This document shows positions 2,102-60,261 of a stretch of 64,000 nucleotides of DNA, piece by piece. How positions within the stretch are numbered: the stretch's first letter is position 1; each line of letters starts with the position of its first letter. The position numbers and the translations under genes were made by a program. The stretch spans positions 496,001 through 560,000 of the forward strand of contig JANHCV010000001.1 of NCBI GenBank assembly GCA_025594325.1, read 5' to 3'. The stretch comes from Blastocladiella emersonii ATCC 22665. Its lineage: Eukaryota; Fungi; Blastocladiomycota. The notes under the pieces are model-generated. The model was not told the DNA's origin, made no database searches, and was given only the letters and a program-made list of their open reading frames with translations.

Positions 2102-2357
2102 GCGTGTGGGCCTTAGGGCCAGAGTTGTTCACATTGTATCCGTTTTCATCACTTGGCGGGGAAGTTCATTAACGCAGAAGCCGCAGCAAAGCCACACAGC
2201 GGCCGACGCTCGTTCGGGGCGTCGGCGCCGGGGCCTCGGGAGTGCTGCTTTTAGCACGGCTGCGGTTCGAGCCGCCACCGTAAACCGTAAAAGCGTCCGC
2301 CCCCGCCCTTTCTCTCGCTTGAGCATCGCCGAGCTACACTTCACGACGACGACGACC

Positions 2358-3756
2358 ATGACCTCGCAGCGCCCACGTTCCCGCTCACGCCGCGCGGCAG
2401 CCGCCGTCCCCGTCGTGACCCTGGCGGCCATGGCCACCGCCCTCCTCCTCACCCTGACCGCCACGGCCGTTGACGCGCGGTTCCCGCCAAAATCCGAGTG
2501 GTGCATCAAGGCGTTCTGCGCGGATCCGCCAGCGGACCTGCTCAAGGCGTGGACCGAGCAGGAGCACAAGGTGCTCGGGACTGCGAAAGTGTGCGGTGAC
2601 GGCGTGTGCAACGTGGCCGAGGGCGAGTCGTGCGCCAACTGCCCCGCGGACTGCGGCGGCCGGTGCACGATGCCCACGCCCATCAACAAGTGTGTCAAGG
2701 AGGGCATGGTCGCGCTCACGTTTGATGACGGGGTTTCGCAGGTACGCCGAGGCGCGAGGTGGGGGTTGATGGAGCGTGATCCCGGCGACTGACACGCGGG
2801 CGGGCGATGTATTTAGTACACGGAGGAGCTCGTCAAGACGCTCAACGGGCTCGGGATCAAGGCCACCTTCTTCATGCTCGGCACCGTCGTCATGGCCAAC
2901 CCGAAGCTGCACCCGGCCATGAAGCTGGTGATTGAGTGTACGCTTCCCTGCCCTCGCCACCGCATCGATGGACATCGCTAACCCGTCAACTATAGCCGGC
3001 CACGAGATTGGCCTGCACAGCTTCAACCACCGCAGCTACGGCCCTGGCGGCCGCGTGGACCCGCCGACGGACAAGGCCAAGACCATGGACCCGATCATGG
3101 TGCGCACCGAGACCGTGTTCAACGACCTGGCCATCCAGTCGGTGATCGGCCGCCGGCCCACCTTCCTGCGCCTCCCGTACCTCGAGTGGACGCCCGACTC
3201 GCTGGCGATGCTCGAGACCATGGGGTACACGGCGGCGGGGATCAACGTCGACAGCGACGACTGGCGGACGCAGGCCGAGGGGAACGTCGACAAGCTGGTC
3301 GCCTCGTTCACGGCGGCCTTCCACGCGGCGCGCGCCAAGGACAGCAGCTTTATCAGCCTCCAGCACGACACGCTGCAGTTCTCGACGAAAGCCGTCCCCG
3401 CGATCGCAGCCTTCCTCAAGCAGCAGAACCTCAAGGCTGTCACCATGTCCGAGTGCCTCGGGATGCCGGCCTACCGCGCCGATGGCGACTCCCCGTTCCT
3501 GAACCGCAGGCTCGGCAAGGGTGGGCCGCTGGCTGGGAACAGCACGGCCGCGGAGCCTGGACGCGCGCAGGCGAACTCGACGGCGGCGGAGACCGCGGGA
3601 CCTGCTGGGACTGGCGTGAGTAATGCGGCGGCCGCGACGCCGACGCTCGCGCCGGGAAACGCGGCGTCGCAGATGAGCGACGCGCCCATGGCCAAGTCGA
3701 CGACGACCGCCGTGTCTTTGCTGGCGCTGGCGCTGGCCGTAGCTGCTCTGCTCTAG
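2358..3756 (+). CDS. Secreted, probably GPI-anchored CE4 polysaccharide (chitin) deacetylase, introns 2742-2816 and 2938-2995
   Basis: All five CE4 motifs are present after splicing: TFDDG, HSFNH, RLPY, DSDDW, LQHD. N-terminal hydrophobic signal; C-terminal Ser/Ala linker and hydrophobic tail. Confidence 0.9.
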
Positions 3757-3835
3757 ACTACTGATCGTTATTTTTTTGTAATCATTGCAAACCTAGCTCG
3801 TATATGTATATCACCCACTCTCTAGCCCCTCCTAT

Positions 3836-5478
3836 CTACTCCTTGCACACGCGCACGACTGCGACGAGCGACGGGTTGAGGCACTTGTCAGGATGCACGC
3901 CGTACACCTTGACGTCGCCCACATGCCCGGCCTTGATACTCTGCGGCCGGACCGTGAGCGTGACGGGCGCCGCCGTCTTGCCCGCCTTGGCCGCGTCCGC
4001 GACCGCGGGCGCGACGAGGGTGCGCAGGTCGGCCGAGTTCCACACCTCGTGGCGCTCGGCGTCGCCCGAGAACTGCCACGCGACCGCGGTTTTCACGGAA
4101 TCGGCCGACACCGAGAGCGTCACGGCGTCGGGGTCCGCGACCGTCGCGGCGCCGTACATTTGCAGGAACGCGTGGTCGACGACGACCTTGCTTCCCTCGG
4201 GCACGGCGGGGACAGGGAGCGCGAACGCGAGCGTCGTCGGCACGTCGGCGCGCTTGAGGTCCACGAGCCCCGACACGCCGTCCTGCGTCAGCGGGACGTT
4301 GACGGCGGCGGCCTCGACGTGGTGCGCGGTACACTTTTTGGGGTCGCGCTTGACGAGCAGGTCGCGCGCGGGCGTCGCGTCGAGCGTCATGGCGAACTGG
4401 TCGAGGATCGTGCCCTTGGTCGTCTTGAAGTAGCACCGGGCGCGGTTCGGCGCGGTGCCGCTCTCGTTGAACTTGCAGAACAGCGCGCCGAACCCGCCGC
4501 TCGACCCGTCGTCGGCCGTGTACTTGGTCGCCCACCACTCGGCGCTCGCGTAGGGGCCGTCGCCGTACAGGAACCGGCCGCCGGTGCCCGTCACGGCGAC
4601 GAGCGAGCGGCCCGGGCGGATCGTGAGGTCCGAGGAAGACTTGGACACGATGGTCTGCGACTCGAACGACGACAGAAGGTGCGTGCGCGAGTACCCGTGG
4701 TTGTGCGCGTTGAAGACCAGCGCGCCGTGCTTCAGGCACGTCTCGTACGCGGCCCAGCCGACTAGGAAGGGTGAAACGGGACGCGTCCGAGGTCAGATCA
4801 TGATCGCGATCAGGTCACGCTCCGATCAAAAGGCGTACCCTCGTCGTTCTTGTCGCCGACATTCAGCTTCTCCTGGTTCTTGTGCCAACCGACGAGCTTC
4901 CACGCGTCGGCGGGCGCGGCCGCGAGGGCCTGGTCGAGGAACGTCTCGTGGCCGGCGCCGCGCGTGCCGACCCCACTCGTCACAATCGTAACCCCGCCAA
5001 ACGAGCACGTCGACTTGACACCGACCTCGCCCGTGCAGTACTTGTCCATGCCGAGCCGCTTGTACCGCTTGGCGATCACGTCGGCGTAGCCCGCCCACTT
5101 GCGCAGGTCGTGGTTGCCGACCGAGATGAAGACTGGCGTTTGGGGGAGCACGCCGTCGAGCTGCGAGATGAACCGCGCCGGATCGTCCTTGTAGTCGAGG
5201 TCGCCATTGATCACCACGGCCGACGCGCCCTCGGCCTTGATCAGCTTGTACACGTCCAGCGTGTCCTTGCCCAGGATTGTGTCGCCCGTGATGGCGATCG
5301 TCAGGCCGCGGTCGACGGCCGTCTTGGTGGCCTTGGCGGCGGCAGAGCGAGCGCGCAAGAGGTGCGGCTGGTGCGGGAGCACGCCGTGCGCCGAGTTGTC
5401 GCACGCGACGCCGAACGCCGCGGCAGGCGACGCGGTGATGGTCGCGAGGAGGGCCAGGAGGACGAGCAAGTTGGCCAT
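3836..5478 (-). CDS. Secreted calcineurin-like metallophosphoesterase with C-terminal beta-sandwich domain, intron 4762-4838
   Basis: Signal peptide; motifs ITGD, INGDLDY, VGNHD, GWHKN and NAHNHGYSRT. The intron joins GDKNDE to VGWAAYE in frame. Confidence 0.85.
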
Positions 5479-5920
5479 GGTCTCTAAAAATCTAGCGAGG
5501 GTGTGGATCGACAGCTGAGGGGGCGCGCGTGAGCTTTATACCCGCCGCCGCTGCCGATCCAAAGTGTGCGCAATGACGAACGTGGGCCTGCCGACCTAGC
5601 TGCGCACGCGCGAGCCCCGTCGAGCAAACCCTCGCCCTCCGAACCCGCGCACGCCAAAGCTCCCACCGTATTCCCACCGGCCACGAGCTCGCGTGCGCAC
5701 GTTTCGACCATCGACTTGCCGGCGGGGGAGAGCGCGGCGAGCAACGGCACGCTCGTCAACGAGCACCGAATCCGTCGACCCCTCGGACTCGCGTGCGTCT
5801 GACAGGGTCCGCGGGAGAAACGTGTTGTTGTTGCTCTTTGAACCGCTGATTTTTTCATTACGGAGGGAAGGAAGATCACAGTGCATCACAACACCGCGTC
5901 GCGTCGAGCGTCGAGCGGGC

Positions 5921-6021
5921 TTAGTACGGCTTGGTGTACGGCGACCCGTAGTAGCTCGACTGCTGCTGGAGCGGCGCGTGCTGGCCACCCTGCTGGCCCT
6001 GCTGCTGACCGCCGGGCGCGC

Positions 6022-6064
<43 letters not shown>

Positions 6065-7561
6065 AAGCTGACCGTAGCTCGGGTACCCGGTCGACGGCGC
6101 CGGCGTGTACGGCGCGGGGGCACCCGCACTCCCACTAGCGCTGCCGTAGGTCGGCGGCGGGACCGTGGCGTAGCCCGGGTAGCTGCCCTGGTGCTGCGGG
6201 GCCTGCTGGGGCGCCTGGCCGCCGGCCTGTTGCGAGTACGGGCGCGGAACCGTGGCGTAGCCGCCGTACCCTGCGTACGGCGAGGGCGCGGCGGGTGCGC
6301 CGGTCGCCTGCGGCTGCTGGGGCGGGTAGGCGGGCGGGCCCGACGCGGGCGCGGTCGACGGCGACTGGGTGTAGCTGGACGCGGCGGCAGTGGGCGGCGG
6401 CGGGTACGCGGACTGCTGCTGCGGCTGCTGCGAGTAGGGCGACTGGGCCTGGGACTGCGACGCGGGCTGCTGCGAGTACTGGGCCGACGAGGCCGAGGTG
6501 GGCGGGAACGAGCTCGAGGCGGCGGCGTTGCCACTGGGCGGGGGCGGGTACGAGCCGCTCGACGCCGAGGGGGCGGGCGGGTAGCTGGACGAGGCCGGCG
6601 GCGACTGGTAGTACCCGCCGTTCGCGGGAGCCGAGGTCGCCGACGCCGCAGGCACGACAGCGGGGGAGAGCGGCGGGGCGGGTGCGGGCGACGCGATATT
6701 CGCGCGGGGCGGCTCCTGCGGCGCGGGCGCAGCCTTGCTCTTCGGGGTCGCGTGGGACGGGCTCGAGACGGCCGTGTGCTCGAGGAGCGACGCGATATCG
6801 TCGTGGTCGAGCGGGCGCACGTTCTTGTCCTTCTCACGCGCCGTCTGCAGCGCGGCGAGGACCGAGTCGACCTGGGTCTTGATGCCCGACAGCGCCGAGT
6901 GCAGGGCGACGACGTTGCGGCCGGCGAGGCTGAGGCCGCGCAGGTCCAGGCTGGCGTCGTCGGCGGGCAGCGGCAGCGTGTCGCGGTCGTTGACGAGCAG
7001 GCGCAGCGTGGGCGACTGGGTGAGGGCGTGGACCAGCTCGTCGTCGGACTCGAGCATCACGGGGTCACCGTCCTCGTCGAGGTAGCGCAGGACCAGGTTG
7101 GCGATGTTGGGCGACAGGCGCTTGGTCGACCGGAACAGGGCGTGGACCGTCGCGCACAGGTCGGCGTGCGTCGGCGACGGGTTGTGCAGGACCAGGCGCT
7201 TGATCGTGGACCCGAGCGTGGCTGGATGGGTTACCGGTGTCAGTGCAGGCAGGTTTGGACTAGTAAGAGACAAGGAGGTACCCTTGATGACGATGCGCGA
7301 CGACGCCGACGAGGCGCCCGGGTACGGCGACGACTTGGCGGCGGCCAGGTTGCCGAGGCTGGTCGCGCTCATGGCCGAGGCGTACATGCTGCTCGACGGC
7401 ATGGGCGGGGCGTTGGTGGCGGCCGAGGGCGGGGCAGGCGTGCTCGAGGCGCTGGGCACGGCCGACGGCGGGCCCTGCGGCATGGCCGGGGTGCCGGCCG
7501 ACGGCGGCGGCGGGTACGCCGAGTAGGCCATGTTCTCGTTGGATCCGCGCGCTGACTGCAT
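5921..7561 (-). CDS. TFG-like protein: PB1 domain + coiled coil + Pro/Gln/Tyr-rich tail; 60-nt in-frame intron 7222-7281
   Basis: PB1 with IVIKATLGSTIKR and the acidic OPCA motif YLDEDGD, followed by a short heptad segment and a PQSY-rich low-complexity C-terminus. Confidence 0.75.
6023..6064. repeat. (CTG)14 microsatellite = CAG polyglutamine tract in the TFG-like gene
   Basis: 14 uninterrupted CTG units read directly. Confidence 0.95.
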
Positions 7562-7854
7562 GGGTGAGGCCGGTTGGTGAGGGAGAGCGGGCGCCGAGAG
7601 GGGAGGGCGAAGAAGAAAGCGACGAAGGTGGCGCAAAACGCGATCGAAAAACTGGGGCCGCCCGCACGTGCGCCTGAACCGCGCAAGGATAGCGCGTGCG
7701 CCGCTCACGTGCCGCGCTCCCAGGCTGCCGCTGCTGCGAGCGCGTCCGTCGGCCTCGTTCTCCAGTCCTCCACGTCCCCGCTCCCGAGCGCCCACCACCG
7801 CGACTCGCTGCAACGCACTCTCCACGCATCGAGCCACCCGAACCCGCAGAGCAG

Positions 7855-9588
7855 ATGATGAGCGGCGCGGGACCTGACGCGCCCAAGCCGGGGGCGGCCG
7901 CCGGCGGCATCGCCGAGATCCAGATGCACATCCGCCGCAACGCCGAGGAGTACCGGTCCGCCGTCGACGAGCTGCTCGACTGGGAGAAGGACATCAAGGG
8001 GGGTGCCGCCAAGCCCGGCAAGGCGACTGCACCTGCCCCGCTCCCGCCCGTGCGCGGCGCGGCGGCGGGCACGACGACGCAGACCATTGGCGCGCCGTCG
8101 TCCTCGGGACCCAAGACGGTGGCGCCGCGCGACTACCGGTCGTGGGACAAGGTCGACGTCGACGCGCTGCTGCAGGAGATGGACAACGACGACAATGCCG
8201 CGTACCACGCCTCCCGCTCGGCTCCCGCACCCGCGCCCGAATCCCCCACATCCCCGCCTGCGCGCAACCCGGAGCTCGCGCAGGTCGAAAAGGAGATGGG
8301 CAACGTGTACTTCAAGAAGTCCAAGTACGCCAAGGCCGCCCAGCACTACTCGGCCGCGATTGACCTCGACCCGGACGGCGCCGTCTACTACCTGAACCGC
8401 GCCGCCGCCTACCTCAAGCTCGACAAGCACGTCGCCGCCGAGGCCGACTGCTCCGCCGCGATTGAGCGCGACCCAAAGTCCGTCAAGGCCTTCTACCGCC
8501 GCGCCGCCGCCCGCCGCGCAGCGGGGAACACGGCCGGCGCGATCGCCGACCTCCGCCACGTGCTCGTCCTCGAGCCCACCAACCCCGCCGCCAAGGACGA
8601 GCTCGCTGCCCTCGCCCCGCCCAAGCCCGCGCCGGCACCGGTCCCGCCACGGCGCCGCCGCCTCGTCGTCCGCGAGATCGACAGCAACCCGAACGGCACC
8701 AAGGAGCCCACGCCGGTGCCCGCCGCCAAGCCAGCGCCGCTCAGCGCCAAGGAGCTCGTCTCCGTCGTCCCCGCCTCGCCCACGACTACTGCGGCAGCGG
8801 ACTCGGCGGACGCGAGCGAGCCGCTGTTCCGCGAGGTGGCGACGACGCGCGTCAAGCCGACTCCGACCGCCGACGTGCCCGCTGCCTCCTCGCCCGCGGC
8901 CGCCAAGGCGCTCGAGTCGAGCGATGCCGGCGGTGTCTCGCCCCTGCTCGCGCCGCCGCCGTCGCTCCTTGCGCCCGAACCGCCGCTCGATCTCGGCGCG
9001 CCGGTTGTGCGGGAAGCTGAGCCTGTGGCCGCAGCACCAGTCGTCCCCGCGGCTCCCGCTACTGAGGCCCCCGCTGCCCCCGCACCCGCACCACGCTCCG
9101 CCTCCCCCGCTGTCCCCGCACCCGCTCCGACTGGCTCGCACCCCATCCCACCGCCGCCCTCGGCCGCGTACGAGTTCGACCAGGCCGTCAAAGTCATGTC
9201 GCGCCGCGGCGACCTGAGCGCTCCGGGCACCCTCCCCGTGCACGTCGGCGCGGTCGCGCAAGCGTACCTGCGCAGCATCGTCCCCTCGCGGCTCCCGTCG
9301 CTGTTCCGGTCCGGGCTCGACACGGAGCACCTGGTCGTGATCCTCGACATCCTCGACGCGATGCCGGCCACCGAGGACCCGCCGCGCCCGCTCGCCATCT
9401 TCCGGTACAACTCGATGCACTACCTGTCGCAGTGCCCGCGGTTCGCCGTCACCTGTCGCATGCTCGACGCGCGGAGTCGAGGTGTCGCGGTGCGCCTGCT
9501 CGATGGGCTCGCGGCGTTCTTTGCGGGGGATGCCGCGGCGGAGGCCAAGGTCGCCAAGGTGCGCGCCGCGTACGCTGCGTGTCTGTAG
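7855..9588 (+). CDS. RPAP3: RPAP3-like R2TP co-chaperone (N-terminal helix, one TPR cluster, RPAP3_C domain)
   Basis: IRRNAEEY...LLDWEKDIK and DYRSWDKVDVD match the RPAP3 N-terminus. TPR motifs EKEMGNVYFKKSKY, YYLNRAAAYLKL, KAFYRRAAAR. C-terminal YEF...LPSLFRSGLD...LSQCPRF. Confidence 0.85.
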   Translation: MMSGAGPDAPKPGAAAGGIAEIQMHIRRNAEEYRSAVDELLDWEKDIKGGAAKPGKATAPAPLPPVRGAAAGTTTQTIGAPSSSGPKTVAPRDYRSWDKVDVDALLQEMDNDDNAAYHASRSAPAPAPESPTSPPARNPELAQVEKEMGNVYFKKSKYAKAAQHYSAAIDLDPDGAVYYLNRAAAYLKLDKHVAAEADCSAAIERDPKSVKAFYRRAAARRAAGNTAGAIADLRHVLVLEPTNPAAKDELAALAPPKPAPAPVPPRRRRLVVREIDSNPNGTKEPTPVPAAKPAPLSAKELVSVVPASPTTTAAADSADASEPLFREVATTRVKPTPTADVPAASSPAAAKALESSDAGGVSPLLAPPPSLLAPEPPLDLGAPVVREAEPVAAAPVVPAAPATEAPAAPAPAPRSASPAVPAPAPTGSHPIPPPPSAAYEFDQAVKVMSRRGDLSAPGTLPVHVGAVAQAYLRSIVPSRLPSLFRSGLDTEHLVVILDILDAMPATEDPPRPLAIFRYNSMHYLSQCPRFAVTCRMLDARSRGVAVRLLDGLAAFFAGDAAAEAKVAKVRAAYAACL

Positions 9589-35866: not shown

Positions 35867-38053
35867 ATGAAGACCAGCATCCTCGCCCTGCTCGCCCTCG
35901 TGGCCGCCACCGCCTCGGCCGCGCCCGCGCCCGTCGGCTACGGCAAGCGCAAGTGCCACCCGCACCACGCCAAGGACGCCGCCGCCGTCGTCGTCCCCGC
36001 GACCGGCTCGCCCGTTGCTGGCGCCGACCACCCCGCCTACGGCTACAACCCCGAGTACAAGCCGAACCGCCCGTCGTACCCCTGGTGCGTTTCGTCTCGC
36101 TGTCGCGACTCGGTGAGGCGGCGCCCGCCATCGCCGATGTGATCACCCGTCACTAACCCTCTCGCCGCGACGACGTCTCCAGGGAGGACAAGGACAAGCC
36201 GTACATCCAGCCCGGCCACACCCCGACCACGCCCGCGATCCCGGCGCCCGTCTACGGCAAGAAGCCCGTCACCGGCGGCCCCTACGCGCCCGGCGCGCCC
36301 TACACGGGCAAGCCCAACGAGCCGTACTGCCCCGGCAAGGGCGGTAACAGCGGCAAGAACGGCACCGACCCCGTCATGCCGCCCAAGCCGACGCCGCTGC
36401 CCAACGACAACAAGGCGTGGAACATGACCCTGATCCACACCAACGACATCCACGCGCACCTCGACCAGTTCAACTCGCGCGGCGTCGACTGCACCGAGAA
36501 GGATATCGCCGACCACAAGTGCTTCGGCGGCGCCGCCCGCATCCGCACCCTCGTCGACCAGATCCGCAACTCCAAGAACAACACGTACCTCGTCGACGCC
36601 GGTGACCAGTTCCAGGGCACGCTGTTCTACAACTACTACAAGGGCAACGTCTCGGCCGACTTTATGAACTCGTACGTTGTCTTCTCTGATCGGATGGGAT
36701 CGCTCGACCGGGCGAGCACGGCCACTGACACGCTTCTGATCCCACTTCTCCAGGCTCGGCTACGACGCCTTCGCCATCGGCAACCACGAGTTCGACGACG
36801 GACCCGAGCACCTCGGCAAGTTCATCCGCAAGCTCAAGTTCCCCGCGCTCTCGTCCAACATGGACGTGTCGGCCGAGCCCGCGCTCCGCGACGTCGTCGC
36901 CCCCTACACGGTCCTGACCAAGTACGGCGCGCGCCTCGGTGTCGTCGGCTTCATCACCTCGACCCTGCCCGATATTTCCAACACGGGAAAGAACGTCAAG
37001 GTCGTCGACCCGGCCATCGCCGTGCAGAAGGCCATTGACGAGCTGCACAAGCTGGGCGTGCAGAAGGTGGTCGGAATTTCCCACAACGGGTACGAGGACG
37101 ACATGCGCGTCGCCTCGCTCACGTCGGGCCTCTCGCTCATCGCCGGCGGCCACAGCCACACCTTGCTTCACAAGAACCTCACGCTGTCGGGCGCCAAGGG
37201 CCCGTACCCGACCGCCGTCAAGAACAAGGACGGCAAGCCGACGTACATTGTCCAGGCCAAGGCGTGGGGCGAGTGGGTCGGCGTCATCGACCTCGCGTGG
37301 AGCGCCGAGTCCGAGCTCGTCGCCGTCAACGGCGACCCGATCCAGCTCACCGACGCGATCCCGCAGCACAAGGCGACCCAGGACCTCGTCCAGCAGTGGC
37401 GCGTCCCCTTCGACGCCCTCTCCAAGACCGTCATCGGGTCCAACCCCGAGGCCATGGAGCGCGGCTCGTGCTCGTCCGGCTCGTGCCCGCTCGGTAACTT
37501 TGTCACCGACGCCCTGCGCGAGGCCTACTCGGGTCTCCTCGGCAACGACCGCCCGGTTATCGCCATGGTCAACACCGGTGGTCTCCGCGCTGGCCTCAAC
37601 GGCGGCGACATCACCATCGGCGGCGTGCTCTCGGTCCTGCCCTTCACCAACTACCAGGTCGAGCTCGAGGTCGACGGCCAGTTCATCAAGGACACGCTCG
37701 AGAACATTGCCAACGACGTCAACCTGCAGAACGGCAAGAAGGTCACCTCGTTCGCCCAGTTCTCGGGTGTCCGCGCTACCCTCGACATGAACCAGGCTGC
37801 CGGTTCCCGTGCCGTCAACATCGAGATCCTCGGCAAGGACGGCCAGTACGCTCCCATCAACCTCAAGGGCCAGTACATCTTCGAAACGCTCGACTTCCTC
37901 AGCAGTGGGGGTGATAGTATTGTGCCCAAGACGTTCCCCGCGGCGAAGCCCCGCCTCAACCTCTCGGACCTCGTCATGGAGTACATCAAGAAGGTCAAGA
38001 CCCTCGGCACCTACAAGGACCGCCGCATCACGGTCATCCCCAAGAAGGCCTAA
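35867..38053 (+). CDS. Secreted 5'-nucleotidase/apyrase family (UshA/CD73-like), introns 36085-36182 and 36672-36753
   Basis: HTNDIH, DAGDQFQG, GNHEFD, SHNG, GGHSH; C-terminal domain with GNFVTDA, NTGGLRA, VLPFTN. Confidence 0.93.
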
Positions 38054-38692
38054 TCGGCTCGTTTGTGTGTGGCGTGATTGTATCTGTCGAATGGAGCACT
38101 TTCTTGCGCACGGTACTTGTGCGCGTTTTCGTGCAAATCGGTGTAGTGGCGCAGCGCGAGCGGGGTGAGTCAGGTGGTGTGGCGCAACGCGACTTTCTCT
38201 TCGCTTGCACCTGGTTCAGTTGATCCAACTTGCGATGCCTTGAAAATGTTTGTGTAAGCGTAATCCCGATGGACACGGACAAGTTTATGAGATCCTAAGC
38301 GGAATCGGTGAGCAGTGCGGCTGAGCGGAAGTTTCCTCATAGGTCGTGCGTGAAGGTCGCTGAACATGTATGAGATTTCGATCGCATCGAGCTCGACGTT
38401 GAACATGTCTTGCTCCTTCGCACGGTACCGCATGGTCGGAGCGGTACCGGACTCCACCGCGCCTCTCGCTCTCACCGCCGGTCGATGTGCGTCCCGAATC
38501 CAGCAACACGGCCGCAGCCGCCGCCAGCGACGGACTGCACGGGGTCGAGGCCAGCCATGTCCCGGCGGTCGCCGACGCGTCTTCCGGCGCCGGCACGAAC
38601 CCTGTTTCTTCGGCCTCCCCGATGCAGAGCTCGCTGCCGCCCAACTTCGAGTAAAAGAAAACGTGGGAGTTTGAAAAGGTCAAAGTGTCGGG

Positions 38693-39069
38693 AGTTGAAG
38701 CGTACTCGACTGGGAGGAAGCTTGGCACGATGGACGTGCGATCCTGGCGGAGATGAAGATCGAGGCGATGAAGAGGTTCACAAGAGGGGACGATGAAGAG
38801 GTTCACAAAAGGAGACGGTGAGGAGGTTCACAAGAGGACAACAGGCTGTATGTGGTGGCTAATACTAGCAACTGGTCAAAGGAACAAGAGAGAGAGGGGA
38901 TGCGGAGGCGCGTCGTCCGATGTGAGCGGGCCGACGCGTCGCTCGGTGAGGTGAGGCGGTCCGCGGCGATGACAAAGGAGATCGGCGCGGTGCGCGTGAC
39001 GCGCGTGACGCGGGCGGGGTCGCACGCGTCCGGTGACTGTGGCGCAACGCGGTCACGTGTACTTGAACT
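38693..39069 (-). mobile_element. Solo LTR of the copia family at 54.6-60.3 kb, flanked by the 5-bp duplication TCGGG
   Basis: 38835-39069 reads identical to 54781-55015, and 38693-38834 is a diverged match to 54616-54780. TCGGG is present at 38688-38692 and 39070-39074. Confidence 0.88.
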
Positions 39070-39499
39070 TCGGGCTCACAAGCCGGCTCACCGACGCTGT
39101 CGCGCCGCCCTTGTTTCGATTCAACGCGGCCTTTTGCAGACCCTCCCCGTTATGGCCGCCGCATTCTTGTCGTCATGATAAAGTTTTTCTCCCGACCCCT
39201 CACATCATTCAGCAGACACTGGGTCACACGAAAATTAATCAAGCGATCGCGACCAGATAGGTTCTCCGTCCTGCTCCAGGGTAGCAGATCTCAGTCGAGA
39301 CGGACGCGCGCCACGGCAGAGCCCACACAAAGCAATCAGTGACAAGACACACCGCGCGGCCGACGACGTGCCCGCGGCCGTCTCAAGCTCGGGCGCAAGC
39401 GTGACGGCGGCCGACGAGTCCGAGGCCGCGACGGCCTTCTTCTTGGCCGGCCTGCGGCGAAGGCGGTTCCGACCCGTCGGCGGCGTGCCGACCATGGAT

Positions 39500-54476: not shown

Positions 54477-54615
54477 TGTTGAGGGCAGTGTCTCGATTAA
54501 AGCAATGAGGTTTGTATTGAGTTGAGCTGCTATTACGGTGAAGCTGAGAAGCGGAACATGAGATCTCACGATTCCCTCAGAACTCCATGAAAAGCGGAGA
54601 AAATGGACACGGAAA

Positions 54616-55015
54616 AGTTGAAGTGTACTCGACTGGGAGGACGCTCGGCCAGATAGACGTGCGATCTTGGCGGAGAAGAAGATCGAGGCGGTGAAGAGGT
54701 TCACAAGAGGGTCGGTGAAGAGGTTCACAAGAGGGTCGGTGAAGAGGTTCACGAGAGGAGACAGTGAGGGGGTTCACGAGAGGACAACAGGCTGTATGTG
54801 GTGGCTAATACTAGCAACTGGTCAAAGGAACAAGAGAGAGAGGGGATGCGGAGGCGCGTCGTCCGATGTGAGCGGGCCGACGCGTCGCTCGGTGAGGTGA
54901 GGCGGTCCGCGGCGATGACAAAGGAGATCGGCGCGGTGCGCGTGACGCGCGTGACGCGGGCGGGGTCGCACGCGTCCGGTGACTGTGGCGCAACGCGGTC
55001 ACGTGTACTTGAACT
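54616..55015 (-). repeat. 3' LTR of the copia element (may extend to a TGTT at 54477); contains four 24-25-bp GTGAAGAGGTTCAC-core repeats at 54691-54788
   Basis: Homologous to the solo LTR at 38693-39069; abuts the PPT. Confidence 0.85.
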
Positions 55016-55025
55016 CTCCCCCGAC
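55016..55025 (-). promoter_or_regulatory. Polypurine tract GTCGGGGGAG directly abutting the LTR start AGTTCAAG
   Basis: Located 17 nt after the RNase H stop codon; GGGGGAG is the typical copia PPT core. Confidence 0.85.
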
Positions 55026-55042
55026 CGCCGGGCGAGTCGAGC

Positions 55043-58000
55043 TTACGCGTCGGACTCGGCGTGCTCGTGGATGAGCGACCGCGGGACGAGGCCGAGACTG
55101 GACACGGCCCACTGGAACGCCTTGGCATCGACAATGGCCTTGGTGAAGAAGTCGGCGAGGTTGAGCGCCGACGCGACCTTCTGGAGCGAGATGATGCCGC
55201 GCTTGACCTTGTCGCGGAGGAACTCGATGGAGACCGAGATGTGCTTGACTGAGCGGCACACGGCATCGGTTCGAGTCACGGCGATCAGCGGCTCGTTGTC
55301 CTCGAGCAGCACGGGCGGGTTGATCTCGGAGTGCGTCATCTGCTTGAGCAGGTCGCGGATCCAGATGACCTCGTGCGTCGCCTCGGTGGCGGCGTTGAGC
55401 TCCGACTCGACCGTGGACAGCGCGACCCATGGCTGGCGCTTGGACATCCACGCGACGGCGGCGCCCGCAATCGAGATGACGACGCCCGTGGTCGAGCGGC
55501 ACGTCTCCTTGTCGCCCGCGTAGTCGGCGTCGGCGTAGCAGCGCCTCGACTCGTTGATGGGCGCCTTGCGGGCGAACTTGAGGCCGTGGTCGGTCGTGTT
55601 GGACACGTAGTGGCAGATCTGGTTGAGCACCTTGCGATCTGCGAAAGTCGGGCACGCCGCGCGGCGGGACGCGACGCCGACCGCGAACGAGTTGTCGGGG
55701 CGCGACACGGTGGCGAGGTGGAGCAGCGCGCCGAGAACCGACTGGTACGCGCGAGTGCGGTCCGCGTCGAGCGTGGTGGTCGAGTGCGTGGTGTCGACCT
55801 GCGACGCGTTGTACATGTCGTCGCCGGGGGTACCCGCGTCGAGCGTGGCACCCGCGGTCTTGGGCGACCTGAGCATCGTGTTGGTGATACCGGACTCGGG
55901 CAACCCATCTGCCCGATCCAGATGTAGTCCTCGTGCTGGACCACCTCCATGTTGAGGAACGAGTCAGCGAGACCGAGGTCCTTGATGTCGAAGACCTTGG
56001 CGAGGTCGGCCTTGACACCCTTGACCTGCTCCTCATCGTCGCCGCCGATCAGGAGGTCGTCGACGTAGCAGATGAGGTTGGTGACGCGGCCGTCGAGCAG
56101 GCGCGTGAACACGCACGGGTCGGCCGAGGTGTGCTTGAACCCGAGCTTCTTGACCTCGGACGAAAAGAGCAGGTACCAGTGACGGCCTGCGTCCTTGAGG
56201 CCGTACAGCGACTTGTTGAGCCGGTACACGTCGTCATCGGCGGCGCCGACACCGGGTGGCGGCCGCATGTACACGGGTTTCGGGAGCACAGCGTGGACGT
56301 ACGCGGACGACACATCCATGGAGTGAATGCGCCAATCGCGCGACGCGGCGACGGCGAAGAAGGCGCGGATCGACGCGTACGAGACCGTGGGCGAGTAACA
56401 GTTGTCGACGTCGATCCCGGCGCGCTGTTGATCTCCTCGGGCGACGAGGCGCGCCTTGAAGATGTCCTTGGCGGCCTTGTACGCGTAGACCCACTGCGAG
56501 CCGATGATGCGGGCGTCGGCGGGGACGTCGGCCTTCTTGATCACGGTCCAGGTACCGTTCTTGTACAGCGACGTGAGCTCCTTGATCTGGGCGCTGGCCC
56601 AGCGCTCGCGGTCGGTCGACCTGCACGCGTCGCGGAAGTTGCGCGGCACGTCGATCACGGTGAGGACCACCGACTGAGTCGGCTCACGAGCAAACTCCCA
56701 CGGCAGGTGGTGTGGTGGTGCTGTACTCGCGGCCGCGGTGATCTCGTCGCGCGGAGATGGCGTAGATGAGGTTGGAGCCGGGGACTCCTGCTGCTGCGCG
56801 GACATGGCGTGATGCCCGCTGTTCTTGCGCGTGTCGCGGTTGGCGATGGTCGAGTCGCGCGGCGTGCGGAACAGCGTCACGAGCGGGTAATTGTCGGGTA
56901 GCGGGTCCTCGTTGTCCTGGGACACTGCCACGTTGGCCTGCGCCCGCGCAGTCGTGCGACCGCCGCGCGTGGTGAGGGCCTTGCGTGGCAGCTCGTAGTT
57001 GCCCGTCTTGGGGTTGTAGACGAGACCGTCGAACTCGTCAGCGTTCTCCTCGTCGTCCTGGTCGACCGCCGGTGCTGGTGCGGGTACACGCGGTTCGGGA
57101 ACCGGTGGTGTCGCGGGACGCGGCGAGGTGGTCGAGGACGACGGGGTCGAGTTGTTGAGGGCAGGCGAATTGGTGCGCGACAAGGGATCCTCGTAGTGGG
57201 GATCGCGGGGATCGTAGCGCGCACCGTCGTCCGTGACGTGGTGCGTCTCGAGGTCCTTGAACATGCGGCGAAACGCCTCGACGCTCGACGTGGCGCGCTT
57301 GATGAGCGAGCGCTCGTCGAAGATGGCGATACGCACGCGCGCGATCTTGCGCGTGGACAGGTTGAGCAGGATCTATCTGCTTCTTGGCCTCGTCGTCACC
57401 GTGGCCGAGGAAACTGTACGGCTGAGCCGTTGGCTCGAGCTTGCCAATGTGCGAGCCGTGGATGACGGGCGCGTACGCGGTCACGCCCCACGCGCGGATG
57501 TTGGCGAGGTTCGGGACGCGGCCGTGCAGCATCTCAAACGGCGTCTTCCAGTCGAGGGCAAACCGCGGTGTTCGATTCCACACGAAGTTCGCGTGGTCAA
57601 TCGCGTACCACCACAGCGAGGTGGCGGCGGTGCTCCTCAACGAGCCTGTACCGCGGGTTGAACAGCTGGTGCAGCGCGTCGCGGCCTGCGTGGCCGAACC
57701 GCAGGTGCGTGATAATGGCCAAGATGATTGACTCGGCCTCGGATCTCGATGGCGAGGATCGAGGGCTGGCGGATGTTGAGGGCGAGGTCTCGGCGGCCGT
57801 GCCGGATGGTGGCGATGGTGGTGGTGCCGAAGAAGATGATGGCGCCAACAACGCGGCGGCAGCAGTGCCGGTCGCCGTGGCCGTGTCCGAGGTCGCTCCC
57901 CCCATCTTGGCCAGGTTTGCGAACGCGAGTAGTAGGCGATCGAGATAGTCGTGCTCGCGCGGGTCGGCTCCCCCGACGTCGGTGAGCGGCGGACCTGCTC

Positions 58001-58987
58001 CCCCGACGTCGGCAGGCGGGTCCTCGGGTAGAAGAGCGGCGTCGCCGAGCATGGAGTCGAGCACGGTGGCCGAGACGGGCTCGTTGGAGCCAAACGACTC
58101 GACGTCGCCGTCAAAGTGGTGGTCAGGCTCGTTGACGTGGCCGGCCAAGTACACGTTGTGCATGGCGTGGTTGAGCATGTCGAGGAAGTTCAGGCCGAGC
58201 GCGGGCGTCTCGGCGGCGGTGTTGTCCGACGACTGGAAGTCGAGGAACACGGACGGGTCCGTCATGGCAATGGCGGGGTGCGAGACCCGCTTGTCGGTGA
58301 TGATGGTCGTGTTGAGCAGCGGCACGTTGCCCAAGTTATCGAGCTTGATCTCGTGCGTGATGGCGCCGTCCCACAAGGTCGCGGCGGGGTCGCGGGCGCA
58401 GATACTCACGCCGCCGTCGAACATCTCGACCTTGTAGCCGCTGCCCTTGGCCGCGAGCACGTTGAACGACACGATCGGGACGATGAGCTTGGGCACGAAG
58501 AAGGTGTTGGCCATGAGGATCCAGACGGGCTTCTTCTCAGTGGTGGTGCACTCGCGAGGATGTGCTTGCCCGTGGCGGCCTGGATCTTGATGGGTCGGAG
58601 CAGCTTGCGCGCGTTGCGCAGGTGGCGGAACACGTTGGTCATGGTATTCGACGCGCCCGAGTCGCCAACGAAGGCGGTCTGCCAGCGGGCGATCTGCTTG
58701 GCGAGCTCCTTATTGAGGAACTGGGGCTTGATGTAGTGCTTCACCTTCTCGCGGCGCGAGGCGATGATGGTGAAGGCGACCGGCAGCGTGTTGGTGGGAC
58801 ACTTTCGTTGGTCGGAGTTGGTGGTGGGCTTGCCGTTGGGCGAGATGATGGGCGGCTCGTCAACGAGCATGGCGTTTTGGACGGGCGAGGATGGTGGCGA
58901 CGGGTGCCGAGGATCTGGAGCGGGCGGCGAAAGGGGAGCAGGGACGGGTCGGGGCGCGACGTCTACTGCTCCCCACGGCCGTTTCCC
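55043..58987 (-). pseudogene. copia pol, disrupted (frameshift/deletion near 58560, integrase core deleted near 57640, deletion near 55910)
   Basis: Domain fragments lie in different frames; no rve DDE core is found between HLRFGH and LWWYA. Confidence 0.88.
58933..58987 (-). promoter_or_regulatory. Putative -1 programmed ribosomal frameshift signal: G GGA AAC slippery site, 6-nt spacer, 9-bp GC-rich hairpin
   Basis: The heptamer is in correct register with the gag frame, and the -1 frame is the protease-containing ORF. Stem GGGGAGCAG/CTGCTCCCC. Confidence 0.75.
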
Positions 58988-60261
58988 GACGTTGTGCGGT
59001 TGGCGGGCGCGTACTTGTGCACGTGCCACTCGCCCTGGCGCTGGCTCGGCTCGAAGCCGCGCGGCGGCGGGCCCGACTCGTAGCCCTCGTAGCGCGGGTC
59101 GTGGTTTGGGCTGAACTCGCCCCACGGCCGGATCGGGCAGCGGATCTCGTTGTGGCCGGTGACCTTCTTCTTGTCCTTGTAGATGCACCACTTGCACTTG
59201 CGCAGGCGGTCGTCGCCGGTGCGCGGGCGTTTTGGGTTGCCGTGGACGTGGTCGTGGTGGTTGGAGCCGCGGTCGGTGCGGGAGGATGATGATGAAGAGG
59301 AAGAGGACGACGACGAGGATGCCGACGGCGTGTTGGACTCGTCGTGATGCTTGCGCTTACCGGCGCCCGACGAGGTGCGCGGGACCCACGAGTGGTCGCC
59401 AAACTCGTCCTGCAGCTTCTCGCACAGCGCCTCGATAGTGGGCGTCTTGCTGCAGGCGCGCGAGATGTGCGACGCGACCGCCTCGCTCTGGCCGTCGAAC
59501 TTGGCTCGGAACAGCGAGATGATCTCGTCAATGCGCAGGTGGGTGCCGGGAATGCACGCGTCGACGAGCGAGATCTCAGCGCGGAACGCGGAGGCGAACG
59601 TCTTGGCGGACGGGAAGGCGCCGGGGCGGAGGTCCTTGAGCTTCTTCATGGCGCGGTCGCGGCGCTCAACGAGTACGTCGAGGTTCTGGTACTGGTCCAT
59701 CATGTGCGCCCACACGTCGCACGCGTGGGGGAGGTGCGTGTAGGCGGCGCTCGACGAGTGGTGGCCCATGAGCAACAGCAGCTTGTCGCGGATCATGGTG
59801 TCGAGATTCGAGAAGTGGATGATACTGGCGTTGTTACCGGCGAACGTGACCGTGTTGAGCGTGGTCGGGTCTTTCTTGATGATGCAGAGTTGCTTTCTGC
59901 AGAGTAGACGGTGCTTGATCTCGTCGGCGGGGAAGTCGATCCAGCCGTCGGTCAGGCGCCACGTAATCGGGTCGAAGGCGTCCGATTGCTCGGTGGGCAG
60001 GGAGTAGCGCCAATCGATGCCGGTCGTGACGACGGGTGCCGGCGAGGTAGACAAGAAGGCGGCGGCCGCCGCGGCGGCGCGGGCGACCGTCGAGACGATG
60101 GTCTCCTCGAGGTGACCCACCTTGGACTTAGGGTTGGTGGTCTTGAGCTCAGCCGCCTTGAGCTTACCGTCGGCGACAGCGAGTGCGTCGGCCGAGGTCT
60201 GCGCGCGGTGGCGGGCAAGCGGTGCCCGTCCCCACGGGCTTTGTTCACGGGCCGCTGTCAC
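58963..60261 (-). CDS. copia gag (UBN2-like capsid region + CCHC knuckle); 5' end uncertain
   Basis: ACDVWAHMMDQY helix typical of copia gag; CKWC-x10-H-x4-C near the C-terminus. Confidence 0.8.
   Translation of the reverse strand: MTAAREQSPWGRAPLARHRAQTSADALAVADGKLKAAELKTTNPKSKVGHLEETIVSTVARAAAAAAAFLSTSPAPVVTTGIDWRYSLPTEQSDAFDPITWRLTDGWIDFPADEIKHRLLCRKQLCIIKKDPTTLNTVTFAGNNASIIHFSNLDTMIRDKLLLLMGHHSSSAAYTHLPHACDVWAHMMDQYQNLDVLVERRDRAMKKLKDLRPGAFPSAKTFASAFRAEISLVDACIPGTHLRIDEIISLFRAKFDGQSEAVASHISRACSKTPTIEALCEKLQDEFGDHSWVPRTSSGAGKRKHHDESNTPSASSSSSSSSSSSSSRTDRGSNHHDHVHGNPKRPRTGDDRLRKCKWCIYKDKKKVTGHNEIRCPIRPWGEFSPNHDPRYEGYESGPPPRGFEPSQRQGEWHVHKYAPANRTTSGNGRGEQ

Follow-up and report, generated by a model that had tools for sequence, protein, structure and literature searches.

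AG...CT long terminal repeats in a Ty1/copia lineage of Blastocladiella emersonii

Few features of retroviral and LTR-element integration are as conserved as the CA-3' end. Within a 64,000-nucleotide stretch of the Blastocladiella emersonii ATCC 22665 genome (contig JANHCV010000001.1, positions 496,001 to 560,000; hereafter the window), a solo long terminal repeat (LTR) reads AGTT...AACT in element orientation. We asked whether these are the true ends of a copia element, how such ends would be made and which integrase could join them to a target. The features of the window that bear on these questions, including a second copy of the same family (family A) and a deletion mapped against its sister family B, are as follows.

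38688-38692, plus strand: first copy of the target-site duplication, tcggg (cccga in element orientation), identical to 39070-39074
38693-39069, minus strand: solo LTR of family A, 377 bp, AGTT...AACT in element orientation
38762-38838: 25-bp tandem repeat inside the solo LTR, 3.1 units
39070-39074, plus strand: second copy of the target-site duplication, tcggg
54616-55015, minus strand: 3' LTR of a 5'-truncated family A element (L026), 400 bp, AGTT...AACT
55016-55022, minus strand: polypurine tract GGGGGAG, adjoining the first A of the LTR
55023-60216, minus strand: internal region of the truncated family A element, corresponding to positions 2183-7542 of a full copy
55909-56556: RVT_2 match in the truncated element, within the family A internal region
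57602-57614, minus strand: integrase-core deletion junction, where the frame changes and family B pol residues 187-337 are absent

Copies and boundaries of family A

On the plus strand, 38688-39074 reads tcggg, then AGTTGAAGCG...CTTGAACT, then tcggg again. In element orientation, the LTR begins with AGTTCAAGTACAC, also read as AGTTCAAG, and ends with GTACGCTTCAACT, also read as CTTCAACT. The original prediction of a solo LTR with AGTT...AACT termini and a clean 5-bp target duplication was borne out at 377 bp with a perfect tcggg, and about 25 other genomic copies share the same boundaries at 96-98% identity. The second copy in the window, 54616-60216, matches positions 2183-7919 of a full family A copy at 96-98% (blastn) and stops at 60216 on its 5' side, lacking the 5' LTR, the primer site and ~1.8 kb of gag; the prediction had placed the boundaries of its LTR correctly, but the element that it took for an internal copy is 5'-truncated and has no 5' LTR. 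Its LTR is longer than the solo LTR (400 bp versus 377) because it carries one more tandem unit, with 3.9 units of 24 bp. Similarity between the two LTRs ends exactly at both boundaries, and GGGGGAG directly adjoins AGTTCAAG of the second LTR, as had been foreseen for a polypurine tract abutting the LTR and for identity that stops at the first A. Near the solo LTR, an open frame at 36860-38053 (plus strand) matches a 5'-nucleotidase C-terminal domain, and a separate open frame at 38410-38796 extends into the LTR, with a TAA ~35 bp before the LTR.

Family A is a real, recently mobile Ty1/copia repeat with AG...CT ends. Searching the assembly (32.65 Mb, 21 contigs) with the LTR gave 45 matches, ~30 of them full-length at 90-100% identity, and we read termini and flanks at 30 loci. 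The start was AGTT in 27 of the 30 loci and GGTT in one, with one duplicated pair damaged there, and the end was AACT in every copy with a readable 3' end. Perfect 5-bp duplications, all different, flank 16 of 17 independent solo LTRs, and the seventeenth has a single mismatch. Matching duplications (gtgga, tcggc and ctcat) also flank three of the four full-length elements (L031-L034; 7.7-8.4 kb). At this base composition a match at all five positions has a chance of ~0.0015, which excludes a chance origin of the duplications. LTR pairs of single elements are 98.9-100% identical, and activity is therefore recent.

Two other origins for these boundaries were weighed against insertion at AG...CT ends. 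One is that the LTR is mis-delimited and truly ends in a canonical CA, either as AGTT...AACA including 54477-54615 or at a TG/CA nearby. Its only support is that 54477-54615, beside the truncated copy, is non-coding and starts with TGTT on the plus strand, the point on which the original prediction had itself entered a caveat. That caveat is refuted by the other copies, in which AACT is followed by the target duplication or the primer site. Taking family A together with its sister families B and E, ~33 insertions have 5-bp duplications that adjoin precisely the AG and CT (or TA) ends, no two independent insertions have the same flanks, and primer site and polypurine tract adjoin the same bases, leaving a canonical CA end with practically no probability. 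The other origin, spread by segmental duplication or recombination in place of integrase-mediated insertion, is exceedingly improbable. A few copies were clearly duplicated together with their flanks: the solo LTRs of L022/L023 (C16), L016/L017 (C12) and L075/L076 (C19:1321560 and C15:1475986) have identical flanks and represent segmental duplications that include an LTR, inverted in two cases. Most copies, however, have unique flanks and perfect 5-bp duplications, a hallmark of staggered integrase cuts. Family A copies have no sequence in common beyond the LTR boundaries, two obvious segmental duplicates excepted; the genome-wide tabulation proposed with the original prediction thus favoured it on both counts, having found no common sequence past the boundaries and 5-bp duplications at AG and CT.

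Two loci show individual peculiarities. The LTRs of the full-length element L032 (G000:C18:386913) differ exactly at the terminal base, with G as the first base of the 5' LTR and A in the 3' LTR, and are otherwise 100% identical. On C21, a locus resembling a family A element with an integrase (L035, G000:C21:204427-209859) proved to be a solo LTR of family A interrupted by a canonical TG...CA copia element nested within it.

Coding content and the AG clade

The coding content places the element in Ty1/copia (Pseudoviridae), and the description of the repeat as a copia LTR held. In family A the Pfam domain order is SH3_retrovirus (integrase SH3-like) followed by RVT_2, and in family B it is rve, SH3 and RVT_2, which is the Ty1/copia order. 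Integrase thus lies upstream of an RVT_2-type reverse transcriptase, between direct LTRs flanked by 5-bp duplications, with a half-tRNAiMet primer site at the 5' LTR and a polypurine tract at the 3' LTR. The usual, non-obligatory TG...CA termini are replaced by AG...CT in families A and B and by AG...TA in family E. A coiled coil and a zinc knuckle mark the 757-aa gag-like frame of family A; a DSGAS protease motif comes after it, and a long 976-aa frame spans the C-terminal part of integrase, reverse transcriptase and RNase H.

Family A lacks the integrase core. When compared with family B pol (tblastn), residues 145-186 and 338-1195 are present and residues 187-337 absent, a stretch that includes the rve core (215-316). 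At the junction, the integrase N-terminal H..H region is followed by 13 nt with a frame change and then by the post-core segment. All five internal copies examined (the four full-length elements and the window copy) have this deletion, no family A frame has a Pfam match to rve, and none of the genome's rve matches lies inside any family A element located. Because the core-less copies have different target duplications, the deleted form itself transposed, and family A is a non-autonomous derivative in that an essential pol domain is missing from transposed copies. Its long open frames, 757 aa for gag and 976 aa for the remaining pol part, could be taken to mean that it is autonomous and uses an integrase of its own; with ~150 residues including the core gone and the frame changed in every copy examined, we consider this highly improbable. 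The integrase must therefore be supplied by another element.

The genome was surveyed by scanning for the primer-site motif, by collecting copia loci with RVT_2 or rve matches and by searching with the sister LTRs. Family B has a 325-bp LTR, AGTTCAAGTACA...TACGCTTCAACT, again AG...CT, with perfect duplications at six independent solo LTRs and matching ones at five full elements, one of which has 100% identical LTRs. Its pol frames span 1041-1208 aa and in some copies retain HHCC and D, D, E. The family E LTR (323 bp) starts with AGTTCAAGT and ends with TTCTATA (AG...TA), and perfect duplications flank two solo LTRs and one full element. At a further locus, L064, the end ...CTTCAACT precedes the primer site. 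The same genome contains a canonical family, TGCTGTAG...AATAGCA (TG...CA), with the duplication gtatc and a single 1857-aa frame. Identity to family B in reverse transcriptase and RNase H is 66-68% for family A and 72-74% for family E, as against 36-38% for the canonical family; by this comparison A, B and E form one lineage, the AG clade, well apart from the TG...CA copia family of the genome. In the termini of this clade the canonical terminal A:T pair is kept with its orientation flipped, and every family A and family B copy retains the CT end.

Some copies in this survey are defective or rearranged. The second catalytic D is changed to N in a family B element with 100% identical LTRs (L042, G000:C21:628560-635580), as is the first catalytic D in a copy of the canonical family (L037, G000:C8); defective copies have therefore transposed recently. 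Elsewhere, 5' and 3' LTRs of family B lie 25 kb apart (L079/L082, G000:C5:1030229 and 1054802) with the duplication ggctt in common and the same 15 nt of host flank on both outer sides, which suggests a tandem or circle-like rearrangement and not a simple insertion.

Replication signals and the joining of CT ends

The replication signals set both ends of the cDNA at the integrated termini, since the primer-site and polypurine junctions adjoin them. The primer site GGTTATGAGCCCTG follows directly after the last T of AACT in every 5' LTR, and is fully complementary to 14-15 nt of the anticodon stem-loop of a tRNAiMet whose genes are present in the genome. These genes are of initiator type (ARAGORN): A1 pairs with U72, the anticodon stem has three G:C pairs and the T-loop reads AUCGAAA. 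On the polypurine side, the junction GGGGGAG-A is the same in L006, L012, L020 and L021, and a GGGAG motif followed by the first LTR base occurs in families A, B and E and in the canonical TG...CA family. Half-tRNA priming, with an initiator tRNA-Met anticodon stem-loop primer site adjoining the LTR, is known from Drosophila copia and yeast Ty5, according to a passage in PMC5371799 citing Ke et al. 1999.

Two observations were made alongside. Nine initiator tRNA-Met genes lie at G000:C1:4810-63780, outside the window (L071, L047), at a spacing of ~7,365-7,387 bp; given this regularity the gene is part of a ~7.4-kb tandem repeat, possibly the rDNA unit. In a further repeat (L053, L057, L058, L063 and L066, for example G000:C9:19409), ...CATCATAGCA forms the end ahead of this primer site, and no RVT_2 match lies near these loci.

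From these junctions we propose the following course. Reverse transcription would be primed by the 5' part of initiator tRNA-Met, annealing directly after the last LTR base, and plus-strand synthesis would begin right after the GGGAG polypurine motif, so that the finished cDNA would be blunt, AGTT...AACT, and would need no 3' processing. A DDE integrase would then join the 3'-terminal T, at a CT-3' end on both sides, to a target cut with a 5-bp stagger, and core-less family A would be moved in trans by the integrase of its sister family B. Blunt cDNA that does not need 3' processing is known from Ty1 (PMC8487063). LTR-LTR junction fossils, defined as an AACT end within eight bases of an AGTT start, were absent from the genome. 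Taken as a whole, we hold with considerable confidence that the solo LTR in the window comes from a young Ty1/copia family, family A, whose cDNA, probably blunt and reading AGTT...AACT, would be joined through CT-3' ends with family B as a probable helper.

The helper role is likely, on circumstantial grounds. At each terminus the A and B LTRs agree in 13 of 13 bases, whereas their interiors are only 61% identical, a pattern that fits selection to keep both families recognisable to one shared integrase. Against a family B-type integrase as the mobiliser of family A stand the ~55% identity of the A and B pol proteins and the D-to-N change in one family B copy. The original prediction had envisaged a copia lineage integrating via CT-3' ends. 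An AG...CT lineage, comprising three families, does exist, but the family in the window is without the integrase core, and the CT-joining enzyme is therefore to be sought in family B. The prediction had proposed to recover and inspect an intact integrase; some family B copies keep HHCC and D, D, E, and no residue change that would explain the altered end was obvious when the AG clade and the TG...CA family were aligned near the catalytic E.

In the case of Ty1, recombinant integrase requires CA when metal concentrations are physiological (PMC8487063), and CT use is therefore no safe assumption by analogy with that element; older work, as cited in a passage of the same paper, holds that specificity needs only an A:T pair at a blunt end, on either strand. 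The clade's integrase might have been re-specialised such that it needs the terminal T and rejects CA, having co-evolved with the LTR ends convergently with the errantiviruses of Drosophila. Consistent with this, the upstream (U3) end AGTTCAAGT is invariant across three families that are 26-34% apart in reverse transcriptase and RNase H, CT is never lost in copies of A or B, and a TG...CA copia family unrelated to them is present alongside without any mixing of end types. On the other side, family E, a member of the same clade, has TA at its downstream (U5) end and shows tolerance there, close integrase relatives among plant copia clades have mixed end types (PMC9804982), and the integrase alignment offers no diagnostic residue. 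We regard re-specialisation as a tentative possibility, somewhat doubtful on this evidence; the alternative is an integrase that merely tolerates either orientation of the terminal A:T pair. It seems rather unlikely that, convergently with errantiviruses, the end requirement of this integrase has moved from CA-3' to CT-3' on both sides of the element, making it a Ty1/copia specificity class of its own.

Relation to known systems and significance

Exceptions to TG...CA are commoner than the original prediction held in calling them rare. LTR_retriever identified seven non-TGCA types in 50 plant genomes, 89% of them Copia, with only the first T invariable (10.1101/137141). Sacred lotus has eight types, among which TG...CT is the commonest non-canonical copia type (6203 copies), and all of these types start with T and finish with A or T (PMC9804982); TG...TT and AA...CA copia families occur in Rosaceae (PMC5659011). 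Like the AG clade, the plant non-TGCA Copia, which include Tos17 (TG...GA) and AtRE1 (TA...TA), are Ty1/copia elements with short LTRs (~250-380 bp), 5-bp duplications and a U5 end of CT-3' or TA-3', and close relatives among them may differ in their ends. Unlike the elements of the lotus and LTR_retriever surveys, whose first base is always T, the AG clade begins with A, and its termini stay an inverted repeat; of the rule of T, then a purine, then a final A or T, the second G and the last T or A fit and the first base does not.

Drosophila errantiviruses (gypsy, ZAM, Idefix, 17.6 and 297; Ty3/gypsy) have AGT...AnT ends as a group (PMC5408687). The resemblance lies in a terminal AGT...ACT, a short inverted repeat and a clade-wide trait, and families A and B (AGT...ACT) fit this form, whereas the ATA end of family E does not. 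Errantiviruses have the order reverse transcriptase, RNase H, integrase, the gypsy-type order with RVT_1, and often env; the AG clade has integrase before a reverse transcriptase of the RVT_2 type, a 5-bp duplication and half-tRNA priming. Since pol order and priming differ, the likeness in AGT...ACT would be convergent. A further comparison in sequence is with Ty5 and Drosophila copia, whose ends are TGTT...AACA: AGTT...AACT departs from these classic ends only by a flip of the outermost base pair. Deletion-derived non-autonomous LTR elements with an autonomous partner are known in the BARE-2/BARE-1 and Dasheng/RIRE2 type. Family A resembles these in having been amplified without an essential pol function and in sharing its terminal cis sequences with a coding sister, and differs in that it keeps most of its coding sequence, including a long reverse transcriptase frame, and in that its helper is inferred.

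CT-3' at the U5 end in plant copia and AGT...ACT in gypsy-type elements are thus well precedented. The initial A that makes both 3' ends CT in a copia element had no counterpart in the plant-copia, errantivirus and Ty1 literature compared, a limited novelty, and none of the papers in the library searched links Blastocladiella with copia termini. A word-based protein search with family B pol returned only generic copia proteins at 27-34% identity, and a full HMMER search of 1.84 billion representatives gave best matches of 28-34% plus one 40% fragment (P0030); relatives beyond this genome did not come to light in these searches. A metagenome scan for AACT followed by the half-tRNA primer site yielded 20 contigs with about a dozen different elements. 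One copia-like family, from metagenome Ga0307515 (L098, L100, L108 and L112), has the LTR TGTTGG...TTCAACT, that is TG...CT, with a half-tRNAiMet site and the 5-bp duplication gtatc, and was found at four different insertion sites; environmental eukaryotes thus offer a further case of CT ends beside a half-tRNA primer site. This narrow scan, in which one family's structure was resolved, recovered no AG start.

With CT-3' ends already described from plant copia and AGT...ACT ends from errantiviruses, the biological surprise is moderate. A clade with CT-3' at both ends, one member of which has TA-3' at one end, indicates that a copia integrase can function without CA-3'. Three recently active families of this genome would probably be overlooked or wrongly delimited by LTR finders that need TG/CA, or that allow only the T-initial exceptions of plants. 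Comparison of family A with family B suggests that recognition likely rests on the terminal 13 bp. If the integrase of the clade has indeed changed its specificity, AG...CT elements beside TG...CA elements in one genome would provide a natural paired system for mapping how the terminal base is read.
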